Shown piece by piece: positions 3,339 through 21,800 of a stretch of DNA of 64,000 nt (positions are counted from its first letter, which is position 1; each line of letters begins with the position of its first letter). The position numbers and the translations under genes are program-made. A model generated the notes under the pieces. The model did not search any database. It had not been told where the DNA came from and saw nothing but the letters and a program-made list of their open reading frames with translations. Origin of the DNA: Klebsormidium nitens (taxonomy: Eukaryota; Plantae; Klebsormidiophyceae); NCBI GenBank assembly GCA_000708835.1, contig DF237019.1, positions 1 to 64,000 on the forward strand, written 5' to 3'.

Positions 3339-4469
3339 CTAACTTTCGTCGTAGTTCATGTGGCATGACTGTTGGTGCAAGCAAGTGCACGTCTTGATAA
3401 CGTACCGTAACTAGCTTATAAGCTGCCTGGGCTTCGCCGATCATGTTAACGTGATCGAAGCTTCAAAGCAACAATTCGCGTCATGATATCATAGTATCAC
3501 TTTGATGACTTCGCTAACATGCATGAAGATATCTGAATAGGTGACGCCATGCTACGGTAGACAATTACAGTGCAGACCATGCATGATGCATGGCATCGTT
3601 GTACATGGATAGACTTGCATTATGAAAAAACGTACAACGGGACGGTATTGATGTGGATACGCACCTCGACAAGGCAACATGGAATCTACTAGATCCGATC
3701 GCCAATTGCAGATTAATGAGATTCATACACCTTTTCGGACCTTGAGTTGGACAGGAGTAACTGAGCAATCCACTCGTGTCAAGCTTTGACATCAAGTCCG
3801 CCTAGCTTTCTTTGGGGGATTGCTGGTGTTTGGAACGCTTTCCTCCAATCCCTTCTTCTTATTTGTTTGGGGCTGAGCGAGTTTTTCGATGTACTTCCAA
3901 GGTTGACCAGGATCAACTCCGGTTGCAACCATACTTGCCTCAACCGCTTCGATCGCTGCTGCTTCACCTACGTTACCCTTGCGATGACGTCCTCTATAAT
4001 CAGGCAAAGTTTACGAAATTTTGAAAAGTATCTAATTTCTTTTTCCCTACCTTTTCTCCAAGCACAACCATACAACTCCTCCATCTCCCTCAAGGGAAGC
4101 GGCCAACCTGGCTGGCCATGTGCCCACTCCTGCCAGTACTCAGCTACACACCTGTAGTTTCTCCCCATCGTGTAGTTCGAAGCCCATGAAGGAAGGACGT
4201 CCGGACGCAATTCTACACCAGCGGCCCCTCTTCCCGGTAAGCCGCTGTCCGCGGCCCCTCGGTCTGGCGCGGTGCCAACCGAGGCCCCCTGTCCTGTTGC
4301 GCAGCCGTCTGTAGCTCCCCCGTGCGACCATTCGCGACTCGGACTGTCCATGGCCTCCGTGTCCGATGCACGGTGGTTTGCAGCTCGGTCCGCATCTCCC
4401 CTTCTTGATGCACCGATGTCCGATGAACCCCCTCCCAGTACGCCGTCGTCTACGGCGTCTCCCTCCACT

Positions 4470-4830
4470 GCGCGGCTGTCCGCAGCTCCTCCTGCAGATG
4501 TGCGGCCGTTCGCGGCAATCGCATCCGGCGCGTCGCTGTCCGCACCTCCCCCTTCCGGTGCGGGCCTGTCCGCGGACGCCCACGCCGGCGCGCTGCTGTC
4601 CGCAGCTCCTCCATCTCGTCCGTGGCTGTCCGAGGAAGCCCCCGTCGGCGCGTAGCTCTCCGCAGCTCCCCCGTCCGGTGCGCGGCTGTCCGCAGCACCT
4701 CCGTCCGGTGTGCCGCTGTCCGCTGACGGGCCCCCGCCGGTGCGCGGCTGTCCGCAGCACCCCCGTCCGGTGCGCCACGGTTCGCGGACGTCCCAGCCGG
4801 TGCGGGGCTGTCCGCAGCACCCCCGTTAGG
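4470..4830 (-). repeat. 30-bp coding minisatellite (~12 units; GGAADSRAPD-like decapeptide) inside the Crypton ORF
   Basis: Plus-strand core CTGTCCGC recurs at 30-bp steps from ~4476 to ~4810. One step is 32 bp (a frameshift). Confidence 0.85.
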
Positions 4831-7800
4831 TGGGGAGCCGTCCACTGGCGCTCGCCCCGGGGCACGCGGCCGCTTGTGCGGCTGCCCTTAACGCAGCCTC
4901 CGTTGCTGCTGCAACAGTTGAGCTCGGGGTCCGCGCGAAAAAGCTCGAAGGATTCCTTCGGACAGCGGACTGGCTCCGGTCCGTAACAGTAGAGGCCTCC
5001 CGCTGCGCAGACCAGGACGGACTCACATTCCTCCCCCACTGCTGGCCGGTGGTAACTCCTTCAAGCAGTGTTTTCAGCCCCGACACCTCTTGCGTCAGAT
5101 CCGCAATATGCTTGAGGCCCAGACGTTCCTTCTCCTTGCAATCCCGCACGTCGCGTTGGATGGCAGCCAGGAGCGCTTGATGATCTCGGAGGAGGGAGAT
5201 CACCTGTATACGATAAGCAATAATTAAGCGGAAAGCAAGTGCCCTTGAAGGACACCTCAATCATCGTTTTTGCGCAACACGGAATGCAGCCTGTCGGTAC
5301 CGACAAGGATTGGTGGACAGGATGGTGAGCCTCCCGCGCTCGGTAGCCTGGTTTGGAGTTGTTGCTACCTAGAACGAGCAGACAATCAACTCCAAAATCC
5401 CTGCCGGACGAGCCCTTCGTCGGGATACATCGACTTGCTTCACAAAAGCTGTGAAGCCATATGAGAGATCTTCCGTGCAGAACTCGAGGCAAAAATGAAA
5501 GTAAGCAGGCGATCCCGCTGCCAATTCTTGGGCGACCTGGATGCCTCACTTTTTTCCAAACATTCAAACGAACAAATCCTGAGATCCGTAAGAGCGTGAA
5601 TTACCTCCGGAGGCAAATTGACGAGCTGGGGAGGGGCTTCCGGTGCGGGGCATCATGGCACCAACCGGCAGCTGATTGAGGTAAGAGGTGCGGAAGTGGT
5701 CGTAAATCCACCGTCCAAGCCGGGCGCTCTCCCCTTCTTTCCCACTGCACAAACGAAAGCCGCTTCTTGCAGTTGGTGACATTTTTCTCTTGATGCAAAC
5801 AATGCAGCCGAGCCTCATTGCTGTAAGACATCGGAGCAACTCCCTTTGCCTGTTCACGAGCTGCCAATACCCGGATGCCAGACAACGGAAGTGCTGGTGA
5901 TGAGCTATCGAGTGGTCAGAACCTTGAGAAGATGCATTCGAGCCAGCTTATGTACTGGTGAACAGCTAACATACTTGCAATGGTCGGATGAAGCTGTTCA
6001 CTACCCGAAGGAGATAAGATTAGGCCAGGCTGCTTACCCGTTATCTTCGGCGTGCCTGACGGACGACCCACGTGGTGCGTGCGTGATCTTGCTGCTGACC
6101 ACGTGCTCATGTTGAAACATGGCTTTGAAGTGCTTGAGCTGGGTCGTACTCCATCTTCTCAAAGATGTCGTCGTTCTCGTAAAATGGTGGAAACTTGTTG
6201 TACCTGAAGTAAAAACACACCCTTATCATAGAATGCTGGGGGTTAGAATGATTTAAGCCTTTCATCAGAAAAACGTATGCTGCCTCACGTTAAGAGAAGT
6301 CACGTTGAAAGCTGTAATTGAGGCAAGAAACGAGCGCAATCCAAGTCTGCTGGATAGGTCTGTACATGAAACGGGTCTAGCAGGCAATGACAGCACCAGC
6401 CTTGCTTCGACTTCCTGGCGGTCTTTCGTAGAAAACCCTGAGTTTGGGTCCATTCAAAAGCAAGTCGGTTCGATATCGCTTTTACATCAGCGAACAGCGC
6501 CAAACGCAAATAACAGCTTACCAAGCCGCCCTCGAGCTGAAGTCCGGATAACAGCCAGGCTCTGGAAATAGAATATGGAACGTTTGGAAGAGTTGGAACG
6601 CCAAAGCGCCAACGGCGCACTCCTCCACGTTCTTGTGGCGAAAACCCCCAAAGTACTCGAGCCGCCCGTTCTGAGAAAGTAATAAGAGTTTAGTGGTTGC
6701 ATCACCCGGATTTGTTCGCATTGACAACCGGGATTAGAAGCGTGACAGCTCAGTTGGCTTCGCTTCTTGTGAAAGACCGAGGGAGAACTCCTCAATTGGA
6801 AAGTTACTGTAAACGTGACAGGTCCTAAGTTGGAACCCTTTCATGATCAAGTGCCTCGAAAAGAAAGCAGGCGCTTCGCAAACCTCCAAATACGATTCTC
6901 TCTCAAGTGACGCTGCCTCAAGCGGAGCTTAAGATTCAACTCGTGCTTTGTAACACCGGAAAGATTCTCAAAAGCTTCTGAGTCCAATATAGGAACGAAG
7001 CTGTTGTCGCTCGCACCTTGTTGGTTTCGCCGCAGTAGCTGACCCCGCCCACAAAAAGAGGAACGTCTGGTCCAACGTTCGCAAACTTCTTGCTGTACAA
7101 GTCTGGGAGGTCGATGCTGCGCCCGTCATCGCCGCGAAGGACAAATTGGTGCGAAGCGAGGAACATGCCCCTGCGGATGAGGAGAATGCTCCAGATGTGA
7201 CTTGCATCCGAGGTTAGAAAAGGGAACAACCTGCTTAACGGAACATGACTAGAACGGAACCGGTAGGGGGGAATTGGTTCGACGCAGATGCTTTTCGAGC
7301 TTATCAGCAGACTTTCGTGGACGCCCGGGCGGACCTGGATGCCCTCAAGAGCGGAAGCAAGGGCTTTCCGGTCGTAAGAGCGGACCGAGCGGAATTCAGC
7401 TAAAAAAGCCGGTCTTTGGTGCGTTAGGCGGCTGAAAGTCTGGCGGGAGGCGTCACCTCGACCTTTCAGGAGTGTTTATTACGTAGAAGCAATGAGGACG
7501 GTCAATAATTTTCTAGAGCATCACCGAAGGCAGGCGGTGTGCTTCCACGCGCCCTCAGCGCTCGACACTACAATCTGCCGCACGAAGTGACGGCAACCGC
7601 TTCAAAAAGGAGACTCCAAAGAGGGGGCGGAACCCGAGCTAGCCTGTGGGTGGGGTGCCCAATCAAATGCACAAGCTTCGTGCCTCGCCATACGTAGCTT
7701 CTAAAGGCCTGATGATTGTTCAAAAGCTTTGACTCGAGTACTGCAATGCTTCTGGCGTGCATGTGCTCCCACCTCATTGTCGTATGCTGATGTGCCGATC

Positions 7801-9475
7801 GCACTTCATCGCCTTCGTTGAAAACGGTGTTAGGACAAGCTGCATACAGCCAGGCCTGACACAGCCGCAACTTCTCCTCCGCCGTGTAGCCATCCGACTC
7901 GGTCCCAGCTTGACGATCGGCGCAAGTGCTGCACACAAACGTTTTGGTGCTTGACAATATCATAGCCGCTTTGAACCCAAACTACATTAGGATTCGCTGC
8001 CTACGAACAATGTATACTCCAGGGGACTTCGTTCTTTTTGGAAAATTGTATGAATGCAGCGCCAGGAGTTGTTCGAAGCCCAAAGCTCTGAAGTTGTTGA
8101 TTCTTTTATTCTGACTATGAGTCCGCTGGTCCAAATGACGTCACCGGCCCGTAAACAAGGAGTCAAAAAAGCAGCTCGGGACCAGAGGAAGGATCGTGGA
8201 CCCGTAAGCATACGCTTTGCACAGTGAACGCATGCGTTTTGGCAGGCCTACTGATAGATCTGACATACCCGGCTTTGAGATTAACAGCTCTCACCAGCCT
8301 GACGCCGATGCTTAGGCACGCTGAAACAGCATAAAAGGAAACATCCAAAGAGACGGCAGAGGGCAGAATTGGAACACGCGTCAGAGCATAGGATTGTCTC
8401 AGATGAGAATGCACTTACCGAATCTTCTTCCGCCCTGTATTCAGTTGGGCAGCCTTCAGGAGCTGTTGCATGGTGGGAATTGCACGGACGTCGCACGACT
8501 GCTCGTAGATGCCATCGAGATTGTCTTGGACGAGCGCAAAGAATTGCATGCCTTTGACGAAGTTGTTGACAACTCCGAAAGACTGCGAAAACGAATGGGA
8601 GTTCGAAGGTCATTGTTGAGGTGTGAGGCTTTTCAGATCTTCGAGCACTGCAATGTCACCGATCAACGGAGTCCCCTCACTGAAAGTCGATGGAGAATTC
8701 TCAAAGGCACAAAATGGAGACGAACACTTTGATTGTGGATCATCATTTCATGATTTGCAATAGCCAATAGACGAGGACCTGTCGAACTCTCCCTGGAAGT
8801 GACATCTCGAAGCAATTTCTGTTTCGGGTACAGGTTGGCAGGTGCAAGCAGGCTCTAAGTGAGCTCTACATATGTGGAAGCAGACCTGATCGAGTCTCGG
8901 TACAAGGCATAGACATGGCCCAGAAACCTGACCGGTGCGCTGGGGCGCGAAACGTGTTTCTCTCCTCCGTTTGAAACATATTCAACAAAAATTATGCCCA
9001 TCTCTGGCGGCCCACTTAAAGTTTAAGCTTACCATGTCCTGGTTGTTGAGTTGGCCAAGGAGATTGACCGCGAGACCAATTCTGTGGGTGGCGATGCGCG
9101 GGCCGCATGCCCAATCCGGTAGAGCCTCTTGGCGCAGCAAACCTTGAACGTAGAAATTTCTTGGGGGAGCCCACGCACCATCCGTGGTGCCGTGACCGTT
9201 TGTTTTGCAGAAGTTCTGGACAAGGGAAGCGAACTTGAATGAGATTCTTCCTTGTCACTGAGTATATGACTGGTAAGTAGGAGTGATTCCTGGAACTACG
9301 ATGTAAAGCCCACCCTTTCAGCTTACGTCAATAATTTTGAGTCGCCCAAGGCAATGTTCTCAATCAGTAAGAACTTGAGACGGAATCCTCTGAAATCTTA
9401 TTTGCACTGAACGTTTCTTGAGGCAGTTAGGAGAAAGGATAAGCTTTACTATAAGTGATACTCTGTGAGGGCCTT

Positions 9476-9990
9476 GATCGCTGCGGGGTTGGACGTCCCG
9501 CACGCAAGGTGACGTCAGCAACAATTGAATGACATGCAGTATCTGGCCAGACAATATTCCTAATTCGACTTCAAGACGGACTTCTAATATTCTTGGGCGC
9601 TGCAGACCTGTAGGATACGAGAAAGATGTTGCATTTGCTGCAAGCAATTGCCGCAAGGGGCCTAGACTGTCCTGGCTCGGGGGTCGCGTACATGCGCTGA
9701 CGTCAGCAACACCTGAACGGATTGCGCTCCATGGCAAGATACCTTCAAGTCGAAGCATATTTTAAGACGGAACTATGGAATCGTTGGGCGCTTCGAGGCT
9801 GTGAGATTCGAGGAAGATATCGCATTTGCTGTAGCGACTTTCCATGAGAGGTCGGACCGCTGCGGGCTGGGAGAAGTCACTTGCCGCAAGATGACGTCAG
9901 CAATACATGGGAGAGTTCATCGTCTGGCCAGACATGAATTCGTCTTACGAAAGACTTTAGATGGATATTCGAAATTGCAGGTTTGAGTCG
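9476..9990. repeat. three degenerate ~190-bp tandem repeats, each with TGACGTCAGCAA
   Basis: TGACGTCAGCAA at ~9510, ~9698 and ~9892, with further shared blocks (GCTGCGGG, TCTGGCCAGACA, GCATTTGCTG, TTGGGCGCT). Confidence 0.65.
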
Positions 9991-10810
9991 CGCCCCCGCT
10001 CCCTGATTGCAATTGAACACATGACGAAGCGCTAAACTTATGTTTCGCCAAAGAGCTTCATAGGCCCAGGTGGTCGGGTTTTGCACTCACCTTGTACGTC
10101 CTTAGTGCCCAAATGTAGTCTTTGTAACTCTTGGGCTTCAGCTCGTCGACCTTCATGATTGCTGCCGTCCAGTTGGCCTGCGCTTGCTGGTCCTCATGGC
10201 TCATGTGCCCGGGCACCCCAGTTCCGCTCGGAGAGTCCGCAGCATCAACGGATCCAGGTGCCGCTTCCCCAGGAGTCTGCTCGCTTCCATTCCCCTGGCC
10301 TGAGGTCTCCGGCTACACCGTGCAATACCGTCGAGCACGCTAGTGCCCGCTCTCCGCCCCCCTCGCCGACTTCTTCCGGCCCCCGCGCTCCCTCCCCGAC
10401 CGGTTGACCCTTCTCACCGGAGCCCCGGTTGCTCCCCCGCTCCCTTGGTTCCGCTTCCGTTTCCGCCGCGGGGCCTCAGGCTGAGGTGAGCACTTGAAAC
10501 CCCTCACCGTCATCCCCCCCAACAGAAGCGGCAGTCCTTCGGCCACGTAAACCGATGGGCACGTCCTCTCTTTCCTCGGGCTCCTCCTCATGGAAGCTAA
10601 AGCACGGCGGAGGCGAAGATGGGCCCGGATTTGTTTCGATGCCGCTTCGGACGAGCCGCTTCGGACGAGCAGAATCTCTGAAAGAAGAGTAGACCGTCAG
10701 AAAACGTAGACCTCTGCTGACCCACTGCAATACGTTTGCGGGAAGGTACCTAAATGTATTAGGAGGGCTGTCAAACGGTCTAGCTTGCTTTTCTGAACAT
10801 ATCATCTGAC

Positions 10811-11939
10811 CTCCTTGCACATGGAAGGGTGGCATGACTTGCTCGGTTTATCAGGAGTGATAGCCGCAGAGCAAGCCGGCCGGCCAAAACTTGAGAACCA
10901 GAAACGTGTGAACGTTTCATGCTTCGCTCATATTGAAGCGTGAAAACTAAGAAAGCGGAACAAGGTGGTAAAACGCAAGAAGCCCTAATCGAAGCAGCTT
11001 AGCTCAGTGCACCAGGCTTCTCAGCATGGGGGTGCCTACCGCAAGATCACTGACCTTCCTCTCTGGACGGCCAAATTCTGAATGTCCATAAGGACGACGA
11101 ACTTCTGAATATAATAGTGTGGCTAACTTTTTCATGCAGTGCTCTTTTTGCTTGCGAGTCTGGACAATGAAGGCTGGCGGATTAGCAAGTAGAGGTTGGC
11201 TGATTGAAGCGAGTGAACAAACGTACCGATGATTGCTCGGCTGAGCACGTGCCGTGTCCCCAGGTTGAGCTCCTGGTGGAACTTCTCTAGCAGCCCTGGT
11301 TCATTCTCCAACCAGTAGCGAGTGCTACCAATCGAGCAAGTCCAACCTACGAACCAAACATTGAAAGGTAAGTACAAGGGAAGCCTAACTTCAGAGGGAC
11401 TTGAAGTCAATCTTGGACTGTCCTAAAAGCATCATCCTCTCTATGATCACCTGTAGCTGCAATGCCCCTAAAAGAAGTGCGCTTATCATAGTCAATGAGC
11501 CCACGAAAACCAGCGACGCATCAAGGCAGTATTTCAAGAGCTTCGGATAAGCAGCTCATCATGAAAGCAAACCCCCTCTTTCCTGCACCCTCTACTCAAG
11601 TTTTCAAAAGGACATGAGACGCAACTTCACAGTATCATCGAAATAGACAACCAGCATCATCTTCCTGCAAGAGCATAGAGCATGCGGTTGGACCAACGCC
11701 AGTCTTGTCATTGAACGACTTTGTAAGCTGCTCATCTGATTCATAGCAAACCAGGCGTAATCAGTGAATGTATCTAGAAAGCTTACACAGTAGCTGCCGA
11801 GCACTTGCAAGTGCCTTCTCCAACATGTCTGCACACCACTTCTCTTGCAACTCATGGAGCCCCTTTAGGCATTGCGCAACCTCGGCTTGAGACTTGGCCT
11901 CGTTGTCAATTTGACGTTGCTTCCTTGCATCAATCCACT
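10811..11939 (-). CDS. hypothetical multi-exon ORF upstream of the 2A-like motif (may extend to ~13.2 kb); partly coiled-coil-like
   Basis: Exons 11939-11787 (EWIDARKQRQIDNEAKSQAEVAQCLKGLHELQEKWCADMLEKALASARQLL), 11735-11652, 11346-11227 and 10946-10811 all have AG/GT edges, matching phases and no stops, and join in frame to the exon starting at 10677. Confidence 0.5.
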
Positions 11940-13557
11940 CTGCAGAATGAAGGGAGAGTTACGAAAACCTAGATAGGCGAACGACAGGGTTCGGGAACTG
12001 AAAAGATGGGGTCAGCACTTGCTGCATCACCAGAAGCCACTTGGAAACATAGAACAACCGGTCGACGTAAAAACTGATGCCATGCTCAAATCTGAACTGT
12101 GAGCTGGAGAGTCTTCCGAAGGGTCCCTTGCAAATGGCTCCCTCGGCGTGTCAATCTTTGCCCGCCCACTGTTGAAAGAGCTTCGATAAAGGTAGTGAGA
12201 TCTATGCTGATTTCCAACTCCATGTACATGCCAGTCCGGCTGAATTCTAATATGAGCAATTCCTTCTCAATTTCTAGAAACAGTGTTCCAGATTGCGCAG
12301 CACCCTGTACGACAAAGCCTTCACCTTGGCGTTGAGGATCAATGCGGAAGTATCCAGCAGCAGTGCTGCGAGTGGTAGCTGAAATGTGCGCCTCACAGCG
12401 GTACTCCAAGCCTCCACCGTGCTTGCCCCCGCGCCTTCCGTGTGATGCATGAGCGCCGCAGCACTCGCAACGAAGTTGAAAAACATCTGTGGGTGGTCAA
12501 AAAACCCTCTCAAGCTGGATTTGAAACATGAAAAAGCATTCGGCGTGATCTAGCTGCAACCTTGCAACGCCCATGTGCGTAATGCCGAATAGCCCAGGCG
12601 GTGCAGCAGAATCTTCAGAGGCATGCAGTATCACAAAGCAGGAGCAATCACCTTCGCAATCTCAATAGCACAACCTTGCAAGCCTACCGAGAATGGCGTT
12701 TGAAGCCCTACCGTCTAGCTGCTCTACAAGGATGTCTTCCACACAGTCAGACAGATGCATCATTTGGCTGCAGGGTGCGGGAGATACTGTGGCTTTGGAA
12801 GGACCTTGTTCATGTGTTGAACCTGCAATGTGGCTGTGAGGATTCTGCAGCCTTGTGCTCTGGTTCAAATAGTTGCTTCTGTGCGTTGAAACAGGGGTTG
12901 GGATCATCCTGGCCCTAAAAGAGAAAGGTGAAATGGAGATGGGCCTTTTCAAGTGGCTGGGCCCAGCCTGGAGCCTTTTACTGCAGCCACTGGCAGCCTG
13001 AGGTAGAGCCATCAGCATAGCTTACACAGTACCAGCAGTGCTGCAGCATGGAAAGTATTAAAACTGGGTTGGGAGTTTCATCAGAGCCTTGAAAGCATCA
13101 CTCCCTGCATCAATCTCTCCAGTAGGTTCTTGCCGCTTCTGCCTCCTTCTCAAAAGGAAGGACGTTCGCCTCTTCAGTTTACTGGCCAGCTAAGCCTTCC
13201 GAGCGTTTGAATTCTAAGAAGAGCGCCCCACTGAGGTGGGAACCCTGATCAGTGGTCACAGACCTTGAAGCAAGGCAACCGTCTTTTCTTAATCAACTGG
13301 TGAATCTATGTACTACCTATGTAGCCTGTAAAGCAACATTTTGACATCCGGTTTGAATTTTGAATTCAAGCGAGCTGCAGGTTTTGTCATTGATATCAAC
13401 GGTTTGCTGTCCAAAAACGCGTGCACGATCGTCGACGACTGCGTACAGCGGCGCAATGGCATTTCACCGTACGCAAGGCAGTCTAACCGGTACGTAACAA
13501 TGCGCTTCAAAGCATACCACAGGCTTTACAGTACATGGGACTACTTTCCAGTGTCTT

Positions 13558-14000
13558 GATCGCACGATCGCATGGGTATCGCCCGGTGTGAAACCGGGGA
13601 GCGCGTGCGATTCCCAAGACTGTCGCCACGTAAGGGGCGACTTATACGGTAGTAAAAATGTCACCGAAGTGTACCGTGGTCCGACGGTACCTACTACGGT
13701 ACTAGGTACGACCGTACCCAGTACCGTACTTCCGCTGTACGCGTTGTACGGCAGCGTCGCGAGCGGCCGACAATACCGCGATCGTACGCGCACAAAAATG
13801 ACGTTCAATCGGAGTCCCGGCCGCCCGCGCCGCAGCGCGCGGCTGTCGGACCGGCCGGGTTTTGAGACACGCGGCCGCGGGCTGTCCAAGTTCCCCCCGA
13901 CCGGGCGGCCGCGCGCGAATGATCACCCGCAACGCAGCCGCCTGATCGTCAGAAGGGCGAAGCGGCGGCCTCGCGGCCGGGCAGTCAAACCGCGGCACGA
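13558..14000 (+). repeat. GC/CpG-rich non-coding element B with dense GTAC cluster and hairpins
   Basis: Ten GTAC between 13671 and 13787. Hairpins CCCGGT..ACCGGG and GTCGCC..GGCGAC, then TACGGTAG (13645-13652). Shares motifs with 308-690. Confidence 0.5.
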
Positions 14001-18800: not shown

Positions 18801-21800
18801 CGTTGTCATCAGCGGTTCGCACATTATTCCCGAAAAGGGTAAATCTGCGTTCTCCTTGAGAAGAGAAACAAACGCTCTTGGGACTGTGTGAAACAGGAGA
18901 AGATTGAACGTGCTTCTCACCAAAGGACGTCAAGAAGTTCCTTTTCCTTCACAGAGTAAGGAAACGAACAGAATAATCTGACCTCGACAGGAGAACAGTT
19001 TGGAACTTCTACCTTTCGCCCAAGAAGGAGGAACTTTGAAGCGTCTCGCTTTTCTTGTACTGAATATATTCTCTAAGATATTCTATGGAGAAAATGGCAT
19101 GACCTCACCTTTCGCAGGTGCCTTGGGTGGGGGGAACTGGTAACCACGAGATCGAGATGCAGAGTGACGGCCAGAACACCATCTTCAAAGCCGTGCAAGC
19201 GCGCTGGAAGGCAAGTTCCGTCCGTTTTGACCAGCTCCGTCCGTTCGCCGGAACGGAAACCAAAGCAAAAGCAGCTCCTTCCCTCTGCTTTGACATTTTC
19301 CAGCGGCGCTGCATCCTGTTTAGAAGATGATGCTCTAAAGGCTCCATCTCGGTCAACGGCGCTTCCTTTCTTCTGCGCCTCTCCTCCTTTTCTTCTGAGC
19401 CACCGCATACGGCGAGACGGAAGTGCGCGGCCTGGTTACTCGAGCTCGATCTCTTGTCCTCCTCTAACCCCACCCGTAACGCGCTTTTCGGTCTTACCGA
19501 GAGCCCTTTCGTGCGAAATTCTACCGCCCTCTGTTGGCAGGTCTTTTTAGCCCTGCTAGCTGATACCGGATTCGTCCATAAATAGAACCCAATCGGTTAA
19601 GCTCCCAATCAGCCTAAACGACTTGTTTGAATCTACTTTGCAGTACCCTGCCGCGGCCAGCAGCGATAACAGCTTCTATCAGTCCGTCCAAGTCTGCCCC
19701 GGTTCATTCTCAGTCTATATTCGTCAACCTATCACTAACCTCTTCCTGAACCTCTGTTCAACCCTGTTTTACAGTACCCGGCCGCCGCCAGCAGCGGCAA
19801 CTTCTTCTACTACTCCGTGAACGTCGGCCCGGTTCACGGGATCTTCATTTCCCCTTACGTCGACTACACCCCCGGTTCCGACCAGTGGCAGTGGCTCGCT
19901 GAAGACCTGCGCAGCGTTAACCGGTCCGTAACCCCCTGGGTTATCGTGAACATCCATAACCCGTGGGTTACCACCGACACCAGCTACAAGGAGTTCGAGC
20001 AGATGCGCGCGAGCATGGAGCCGCTGACGTACCGCTGGGGTGTGGACATCTTCTACTATGGTGGGTTTTACCGTTCTAACCATACTCGTTTGACCCCGGT
20101 TTGGGCTCGGGTGGTTAAGAGCTGACCGTAGATTCGCTTGCTAGGGACTTGTTCTTTGGTACGTTCGTCTCTCTGCGCGGTTTTGTGTCAATCTGTTCAC
20201 TTGGACATTCATCTCTGAAATAGAGCGGAGGTGTTACTTCTTGGTTGGAACTTACTGTTGCTGAGTACATTGCCTGGGAGTCGCTAGCTGCGATCCTCTG
20301 ACTGGAAAGAGACCTCTCGACATGGTCAAACCTCTTCTCGAAACTTGGTTTCCTAAAGAGTGGTCACAATCTCAACTGCACTGCTTACTTCGTGTAGGTC
20401 ACGTGCACTCTTACGAGCGCACATACCCTGTTTACGACTACGTGGTACGTCGTAAATGCTCGTCCTGTCTTCTCTGTCCTTCTCATGCGTTACTCTCGAC
20501 GATCCCAATCCCAATCCCATTCTGCATTCCGTGTTTCTCCTGCATTTGATCCCAGCCAGCTCCGCTTCGTGATGCCTCAAATCTGGGTGCCGCCTTCTCA
20601 TTCAACCTTGACTTGATTCCGCAAGCTTTGCGTACACTGCCACGTGTCCGAATGGCGCCCCTGAATCACTGAAACGAACCGCCCTGCGAAAACGGGTGTG
20701 GTTCTGGGAACCCTGAACCTCACAATACTTGCACGTCATGTCTTTTTCTCCTTGAGCCTCAGATGCCTTGAAGCCCTGAATTTCGATCCTCCTTTCCTTT
20801 ACTAGTACTCATGAGCTTCTGCACAACTTTCGTCTGTCGTCTGTCGATTTGATACAGGGCGTATCTTCACGTTTCTCGCATGCTGTGTTTCTTTTTCCTC
20901 TAACCCTCAGAACTTCGAACTTTAAGCCCGAATCCGAAAAAGCCTCCTTCTCGTCTGCCAGATCGACCCCTGCGGTGCCGTCCACATCACCATCGGCGAT
21001 GCCGGAAACGCGGAAGGCCTCTCCGGACTGGCCTCGGACAAACTTCAGCACAGTGAGTCCGGAATGTCCGAATTGCAGCAATCGGGTGGTACTCAAATGA
21101 TTGATGGAGGCCGCTCGAAGCGTCGCATTAAATTCAGTCCTATCAGGCCCTATTCTTTTGCCAGATAGGTACTCCTTTAATCAGAACCCTGAGTAACTTT
21201 CTGCGGACACGTGGGTCACGTGAGCTTTGCCTGGTGGCGGCCAATAATCCTGGGCGGTCGACCGGGTGGGTTGTCAACCTCTCCGGCTTTCCGAGCCGAG
21301 ACAAGTCTCCAAAGATACTGTTACCAGATTCTTTTGATAGCAAACCATCAGGCAAACGAGTACGAAAACCTTATTGAAGATGCAATTGCCGCCAGCAGCC
21401 CATTCCGCGCAGTTACCTTGTCCCGCTTCGCTGTTTCCAAAATCTCCAATCCTTGAATCTGCAGAGTACGAGGACCTTAACAACGGCTGCCCGGTTGTCG
21501 CCAACAGCAGCGTCCGCCCCGGTTACCTCGTCCCGGTTGACCCGACGATCAACGACCCGTGGTCGTTTTTCAAGCGCGCGCTGACGTACAATGCTGACGG
21601 CAACAGCTCTTCCCCGGGGGGTACCCCCGGGTACTGCGACAAGGCGCAGCCCGCGTGGAGCGCTTACCGGGAGAGCAGCTTCGGGCACGGGACATTGGAC
21701 ATCGTGAACGGGACATATGCCCGCTGGTGAGCTTGGAACTCTTCGTAAGTGTGACCAGGTTTGAATGCTGATCAATCAAAGTCAAAAAGAAGAAACTTCT

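Follow-up and report, generated by a model that had tools for sequence, protein, structure and literature searches.

Whether a DNA transposon can use a 2A (StopGo) peptide to obtain two proteins from one message is the question raised by a 64,000-nucleotide stretch of Klebsormidium nitens DNA (positions 1 to 64,000 of contig DF237019.1, assembly GCA_000708835.1; the whole stretch is called the window here). An earlier note on this sequence had reported 2A-like codons, next to a short tandem duplication, at the N-terminus of a Crypton recombinase reading frame. Taking the window together with its relatives, we put at about 80% the probability that the motif is a genuine 2A/StopGo peptide of a multi-exon CryptonF-like transposon family with the order U-2A-NLS-recombinase-GCR1_C (U being the protein encoded upstream of the motif), of which the window holds a transcribed relic.

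The minus-strand codons from 10655 to 10620 read CTC GTC CGA AGC GGC ATC GAA ACA AAT CCG GGC CCA, that is LVRSGIETNPGP, as the earlier note had it, and the motif is a genuine feature of the sequence. The N-P-G-P residues are encoded by AAT CCG GGC CCA (10631-10620), with the Gly/Pro "skip" point at 10623/10622. In the published expanded 2A core, (D/G/C/N)(V/I)ExNPGP, a G at the D position falls within the definition, and here the residues preceding NPGP are G-I-E-T in the window and G-[IV]-E-x in every copy with DNA sequence. Upstream of the core there is a Leu-rich hydrophobic stretch, ILLV-R-S in the window and [IL]LL[IVL]R[SAG] in the family. The 14-bp tandem duplication (10641-10668) is also exact as described and breaks the frame just before GIETNPGP; with one unit deleted in silico, the frame of the window reads (E)ILLVRSGIETNPGP.

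The locus gives rise to a spliced transcript. Four runs were aligned to positions 6501-12500 of the window, one of DNA and three that behave as RNA, these three being taken as RNA solely from the GT..AG ends of their joints and the lack of these joints in the DNA run. The contigs of the three RNA runs are identical to the window and contain minus-strand joints, all GT..AG and all absent from the DNA run. From 5' to 3', they define an exon ending at 12713 (U1), exons at 12487-12325 (U2), 11939-11785 (U3), 11344-11227 (U4), 10677 to about 10091 (exon 5, the 2A exon), 9215-9033 (exon 6), 8582-8419 (exon 7), 7928-7772 (exon 8), 7169-7017 (exon 9), and 6670-6521 (exon 10), and then an exon from 6200 (exon 11); if contiguous, they extend upstream to about 13466. 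The 2A exon has its acceptor, cag/AG, at 10677 and its donor, AAG/gtgagt, at 10091, and the 2A motif begins 22 nt inside it. The intron that separates it from U4 (10678-11226, GT..AG, phase 1) is removed in all three RNA runs by a joint between 10677 and 11227; the junction 10811/10677 that had been proposed is wrong. RNA contigs cover 10381-10677 with no gaps, and therefore the duplication is present in the mRNA. They have no coverage at 10152-10337, which we read as an assembly break and not as an intron, since the DNA unitigs are broken at the same points.

Two side observations were made in these alignments. In RNA run X5 the intron after exon 9 is kept, with a contig continuous over 6694-7169, while runs X6 and X7 join 7017 to 6670; the signal of X5 at 6694-7016 is intron retention or incomplete processing. 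In the DNA run, another contig shows 12 differences within 8417-8547 and is joined to sequence near 7933 (window 7933-8547); it has the appearance of a diverged paralog of exons 7-8 from the same sample.

The gene downstream of the motif is Crypton-like, as had been claimed. All its parts lie on the minus strand. Exon 9 contains LRGDDGRSIDLPDLY in the box I Arg region; exon 10 gives a weak Pfam match to NDC10_II (E value of 0.04), a domain that one relative, P0007, carries on record; exon 11 (6037-6200) has KITHAPRG in the HxxR region; and exon 12 (5618-5749) has GRW...SYL in the catalytic Tyr region. The strings LRGDDGR, THAPRG, and GRW..SYL are thus visible in the window, where exon 11 is frameshifted near 6144 and exon 12 is truncated, with only its first 43 of 77 residues recognizable. 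The C-terminal piece (3980-4174) matches the GCR1_C DNA-binding domain (PF12550; E value of 3.2e-9, 37.4 bits against a cutoff of 23), found also in P0001, P0002, L005, and L007. The exons of the window are 90 to 94% identical in protein to those of the relatives, and copies of the element occur on at least six different contigs. No reverse transcriptase, DDE transposase, or other enzyme domain was found in the window and relative exons tested. L001 also contains an RVT_1 reverse-transcriptase open reading frame (ORF) (19272-20999), some 8 kb downstream of its Crypton copy, in what is a transposon-rich neighborhood.

The architecture can be assigned to CryptonF because the recombinase is followed by a C-terminal GCR1_C. 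CryptonF elements, with this same succession of tyrosine recombinase and GCR1_C, have been described from fungi and oomycetes, and a C48/Ulp1 peptidase occurs as an extra protein in some Cryptons (Kojima & Jurka 2011, PMC3212892). The element studied here resembles CryptonF in the order of the two domains, and some Cryptons in having an extra protein. It differs from CryptonF in its host, a streptophyte alga, and in a gene with at least 12 introns, and from the Cryptons with C48/Ulp1 in that its extra protein is a CxxC...CxxH/coiled-coil module attached via the 2A and not a separate domain or ORF.

The limits of the element in the window are approximate, with homology ending near 3802 on the 3' side and a block of 116 nt at 13536-13650 (minus strand) on the 5' side. 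This block is about 80% identical to its counterparts in L003 (reverse complement, 3991-4105) and L007 (721-841), gave no match in Rfam, and is a candidate for the 5' end or promoter region of the element, as judged from the alignments. Between recombinase and GCR1_C, the linker of the window copy (4461-4863, in the minus-strand ORF 3971-4825) consists of repeats of about 30 nt encoding variants of (A/P)(P/E)(D/E)GGAADS(R); repeats of the same kind, in different copy numbers, are found in the linkers of P0001 and L007. Elsewhere in the window, from 26255 to 60183, there are many short direct-repeat families (D2-D16) with a spacing of 130 to 340 nt that resemble tandem exon-sized units.

Searches with the GCR1_C piece, exon 12 (representatives), and the 2A exon of L009 led to relatives on contigs of two JGI samples, of several Logan assemblies, and of NCBI GCA_000708835.1. 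The 123-aa stop-to-stop piece containing the motif had no match in a word-index protein search, a result that is uninformative on longer proteins. A metagenome scan with exon 9 of the recombinase as its anchor gave a single irrelevant locus and missed even L001, the collection scanned being evidently devoid of these contigs. L002, L004, L005, L013, and L014, whose contigs end before the 2A region, were left out of the comparison of the motif.

The search for G[IV]ExNPGP in other Crypton copies, suggested in the earlier note, was positive. The motif lies at the start of the same exon in seven relatives, with the consensus [IL]LL[IVL]R[SAG]G[IV]ExNPGP and an intact NPGP in six of them. The exon opens with ILLIRSGIESNPGP in L001, LLLL*SGIESNPGP in L007 (the Arg codon is now TGA), LLLIRAGIEVDPGP in L009 (N is replaced by D, giving DPGP), ILLIRAGIEVNPGP in L010/P0026, LLLIRAGIEMNPGP in L012/P0028, and ILLIRGGVEQNPGP in L011/P0029; in P0027 the gene call begins within the motif (...MNPGP). 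The junction between U4 and the 2A exon is in phase 1 and in frame in the four relatives examined (L009, L010, L011, and L012), and also in the window once the duplication is removed. One continuous ORF runs across the 2A and connects the two protein modules in L009, L010/P0026, L011/P0029, and L012. In L010 there are no stops from U2 through exon 11, within the limits of its contig, and P0026 has an open reading of 311 aa across the whole 2A exon.

Most of these copies are themselves damaged. Among those readable past the 2A exon, L001 has a TAA, L007 the TGA at Arg, L009 the N-to-D change, and L012 a frameshift, and no complete intact element was found (L010 is free of lesions but limited by its contig). 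L009 is stop free in each exon checked (6245-6397, 7734-7901, and 8817-9047) and carries missense changes at the recombinase motifs (LRGDD to FHGDD, HAPRG to HAPHG, and TSYL to TFYL) in addition to NPGP to DPGP, a pattern that reads as decay without stops, of the 2A motif and the enzyme alike. Compared with L001, the window is 73 to 88% identical in DNA over the exons that follow the 2A exon (81 to 88% in most of them) and about 71% identical over the 2A exon, while the introns do not align at all, which indicates that the coding parts were long under constraint.

A member of what appears, from shared sequence, to be the same family has already been scored in a skipping assay. The peptide SRAIIEILLLRSGIEKNPGP of the K. 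nitens protein GAQ92643.1 is listed as "skipping" in HEK293T cells, and was also imaged individually in HEK293T landing-pad cells (Snell & Matreyek, supplement, bioRxiv 10.64898/2026.06.17.732966). In that preprint the protein is a "putative Transcription activator" with the 2A at residues 80-100 and the fold annotation [quoted passage not shown] (bioRxiv 10.64898/2026.06.17.732966). Comparison by eye of short strings in the printed sequence with the spliced translation of the window showed that both have ARQLLCWT, GSTRYWLE, LSRAIIEILL, RSGIE.NPGP, PRKRKRNQ, QANWTAAIMKVDELKPKSYKDYI, and SFGVVNNFVKGMQFFALVQDNLDGI, i.e., GAQ92643.1 shares with the window U3, U4, the 2A, the NLS, the N-terminal region, and recombinase exons. 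The 20-mer of the window differs from the assayed peptide at two of 20 positions (V and T in the window for L and K), and GAQ92643.1, in contrast to the broken copy of the window, is annotated and has an open reading frame.

The alternative that survives best, at something like one chance in ten by our estimate, is that the conserved [IL]LLxRxG[IV]ExNPGP is a linker, an interaction or protease site, or a constraint of the splice acceptor or of an exonic enhancer, with no skipping in the alga. The motif does lie directly at a splice acceptor, and splicing could impose part of the nucleotide constraint. However, the conservation is at the level of amino acids: in pairwise comparisons, the codons of the seven fixed core positions show 54 synonymous and 12 nonsynonymous differences, third positions are free, and all four Pro codons, GGC and GGG, GAA and GAG, and AAT and AAC all occur, which argues against a constraint on the RNA. 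Five residues (T, S, V, M, and Q) occur at the x position of the core, and downstream of NPGP the next 14 residues are hardly alignable among copies. The pattern of conserved and free positions is that which defines 2A peptides and matches their consensus exactly, and a near-identical peptide of the family is the one skipped in human cells. We thus favor a selected StopGo peptide over a motif conserved for other reasons.

The upstream protein also belongs to the element. U1 (12713-13018), which contains the candidate start (ATG 13018), is not conserved in the relatives, while U2 to U4 were detected with tblastn upstream of the 2A exon in L003, L007, L009, L010, L011, and L012. U2 has a CxxC...CxxH that is invariant across copies and may form a zinc ribbon; U3 is charged and helix-like, resembling a coiled coil; and U4 reads ...GSTRYWLENE...LSRAII in the window, its end, ...L(N/K)LG..H.LS.A.. 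across copies, leading into the 2A as the N-terminal half of the 20-aa 2A region. The exons U1-U4 from four loci gave nothing significant in Pfam, and an AlphaFold2 model of the U2 exon alignment (shallow, with six sequences) had a pLDDT of 52 and strands only. Since the protein of U2-U4 is conserved across copies, whereas the introns of the window and L001 cannot be aligned, U is encoded by the element and under constraint.

These same exons bear on a very different reading, in which the element is a promoterless gene trap that has no upstream protein of its own and uses its acceptor and 2A to shed borrowed host exons. It was suggested by the homology between the window and L001, which seemed to start exactly at the acceptor of the 2A exon. 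Nevertheless, the introns within the recombinase gene are likewise unalignable between these two copies, and hence missing intron homology is uninformative on where the element begins. In addition, the 4.7 kb that precede the 2A exon are about 80% identical in L003 and L007, a homology that starts exactly at the 116-nt block, which is common to the window and marks a shared upstream limit. Contradicted by U2-U4 upstream of the 2A exon in six loci, the gene trap was rejected, and we regard it as very improbable.

The copy in the window is broken in several places. The spliced ORF that starts at ATG 13018 runs through U1-U4 (247 codons) and continues in frame across the phase-1 intron into ...LSRAII-E-ILLVRSG, but past the duplication it reads SSEAASKQ... 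in place of IETNPGP and reaches a stop at 10342-10340. The predicted product is therefore U followed by about 112 out-of-frame residues. In the frame of NPGP there is no ATG upstream of the motif in the mRNA, and this frame ends at a TGA (10478-10476) before the basic NLS-like patch PRRKRKR (10451-10471), which is in another frame; the note's continuous "PSSPPP...PRRKRKR" does not hold as one frame. In the relatives, the exon encodes the 2A, the NLS, and the N terminus of the recombinase, with the patch kept as (R/K)KRK(R/Q). Aligned to L001, the 2A exon of the window has differences of +14, +3, -14, -2, -6, and -40 nt, and two frame-0 stops lie inside it, near 10340 and 10315. Because the duplication shifts the frame of the mRNA, no continuous translated ORF joins the two protein modules in the window. 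The motif is out of the translated frame, its codons are untranslated under ordinary scanning, and the locus is a transcribed pseudogene, a relic of the element. The idea that the co-translational release of an NLS-bearing recombinase takes place here is accordingly not supported for the window, where IETNPGP is out of frame, and is supported for the family by the conserved in-frame motif and by the skipping of the near-identical K. nitens peptide in human cells.

It could still be argued that the window copy is rescued, by use of another acceptor, by programmed frameshifting, or by read-through, and yields a released recombinase, since the locus is transcribed and spliced and the indels of the 2A exon add up to -45 nt, a multiple of three that brings frame 0 back at the end of the exon. 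We give this very little credence: 10677 is the only acceptor in the three RNA runs, no AG in the duplicated stretch opens the 2A frame, and the two frame-0 stops within the exon are followed by the frameshifted exon 11 and the truncated exon 12. A simpler version, in which the +14 duplication is offset by the -14 deletion, was dropped because there are more shifts and stops downstream.

The degenerate pattern G-I-E-[ST]-N-P-G-P has one zero-mismatch match in the window and no other even at two mismatches, whereas shuffled sequence would give about 0.02 matches per 64 kb. All the [VIL]ExNPGP found in six frames over 246 kb (the window plus the fetched loci) are in the same Crypton exon, and the few bare NPGP elsewhere in those 246 kb lack the [VIL]Ex context. 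A chance match in GC-rich sequence, of which a 100-Mb genome would be expected to contain some for so short and degenerate a pattern, is contradicted by seven other copies that have the motif where the homologous exon starts, with none in the rest of the 246 kb, and can be set aside as extremely improbable.

The earlier note cites, as a viral 2A peptide with a G at the D position, LIRAGIESNPGP of infectious flacherie virus, and the L(L/I)IRAGIE.(N/D)PGP of L009, L010, and L012 is close to the string cited. Viral class A peptides of this kind are part of RNA-virus polyproteins and have no intron, and the likeness implies no homology past the short motif. According to published surveys, 2A is nearly absent from plant viruses, and two preprints of 2026 say or suggest that, outside RNA viruses, 2A peptides have been described mostly in non-LTR retrotransposons and a few host genes, the only contexts that their main texts discuss. 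The APE-type non-LTR retrotransposons (Odon et al. 2013, PMC3708506; trypanosome Ingi/L1Tc) are likewise mobile elements with an NPGP StopGo N-terminal to the mobility enzyme. However, they have an APE endonuclease and a reverse transcriptase, and their 2A is mostly D(V/I)ExNPGP and located near the N-terminus of the ORF (PMC3708506), while the Klebsormidium element is a tyrosine-recombinase DNA transposon with G for D, in which about 150 to 250 conserved residues of a separate protein precede the 2A and the coding sequence is split by an intron.

No paper linking 2A with Crypton or DNA transposons was found in our literature search. The earlier note knew of no 2A in a tyrosine-recombinase DNA transposon. 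This agrees with the papers searched as far as their main text goes, including that of Snell & Matreyek, which has no mention of recombinases, Cryptons, or GAQ92643.1; it is weakened by the table of this 2026 preprint, which lists the family peptide under "Tyrosine Recombinase Domain Containing Protein" (bioRxiv 10.64898/2026.06.17.732966). There, GAQ92643.1 is not named as a Crypton or a DNA transposon, and the upstream protein, the position of the intron, and the conservation of the motif do not appear. The combination of a DNA transposon, an accessory protein, and an intron-spanning 2A is new as described biology, though partly pre-empted by that table. The same supplement scores as "skipping" a second K. 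nitens protein, GAQ93188.1, in which a CxxC...CxxH stretch and a long helix are followed by ...LLNIGGVEPNPGP (bioRxiv 10.64898/2026.06.17.732966), and which is probably from a sister family with the same accessory-2A layout.

In an intact member, one mRNA with one ORF would encode U, the 2A, the NLS, the tyrosine recombinase, and GCR1_C, in this order. U would comprise a variable N-terminus, the zinc-ribbon-like CxxC...CxxH exon, the coiled-coil exon, and a helical exon. The 2A region, with a G-variant core, G(I/V)ExNPGP, would span the phase-1 intron, its last 14 residues opening the recombinase exon. At this point we infer that the ribosome skips the Gly-Pro bond and lets go U ending in ...NPG, after which translation would resume with a Pro-initiated recombinase carrying the KRKR nuclear signal some 60 to 70 residues in. 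Two separate proteins could in this way be obtained from one promoter and one spliced mRNA. In more general terms, we lean toward the view that Klebsormidium Cryptons are polyprotein DNA transposons, in which a selected, intron-straddling StopGo frees a zinc-ribbon/coiled-coil accessory protein from a nuclear-targeted tyrosine recombinase, and that sister families of this genome use other 2A variants (such as the GGVEPNPGP of GAQ93188.1) to the same end.

The window locus itself is a dead copy and serves mainly as an entry point to the family. If the proposed reading is true, this would be the first DNA transposon described to use ribosome skipping, and a natural Crypton system of two proteins, with the 2A device as a selected part of a tyrosine-recombinase DNA transposon of a streptophyte alga. 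It would show a route by which an intron-rich eukaryotic transposon obtains two proteins from one promoter, and it points to a conserved accessory protein in Cryptons. The family is directly testable, since the peptide of one of its members has already been scored as skipping, and it would supply a native 2A peptide from the plant lineage.
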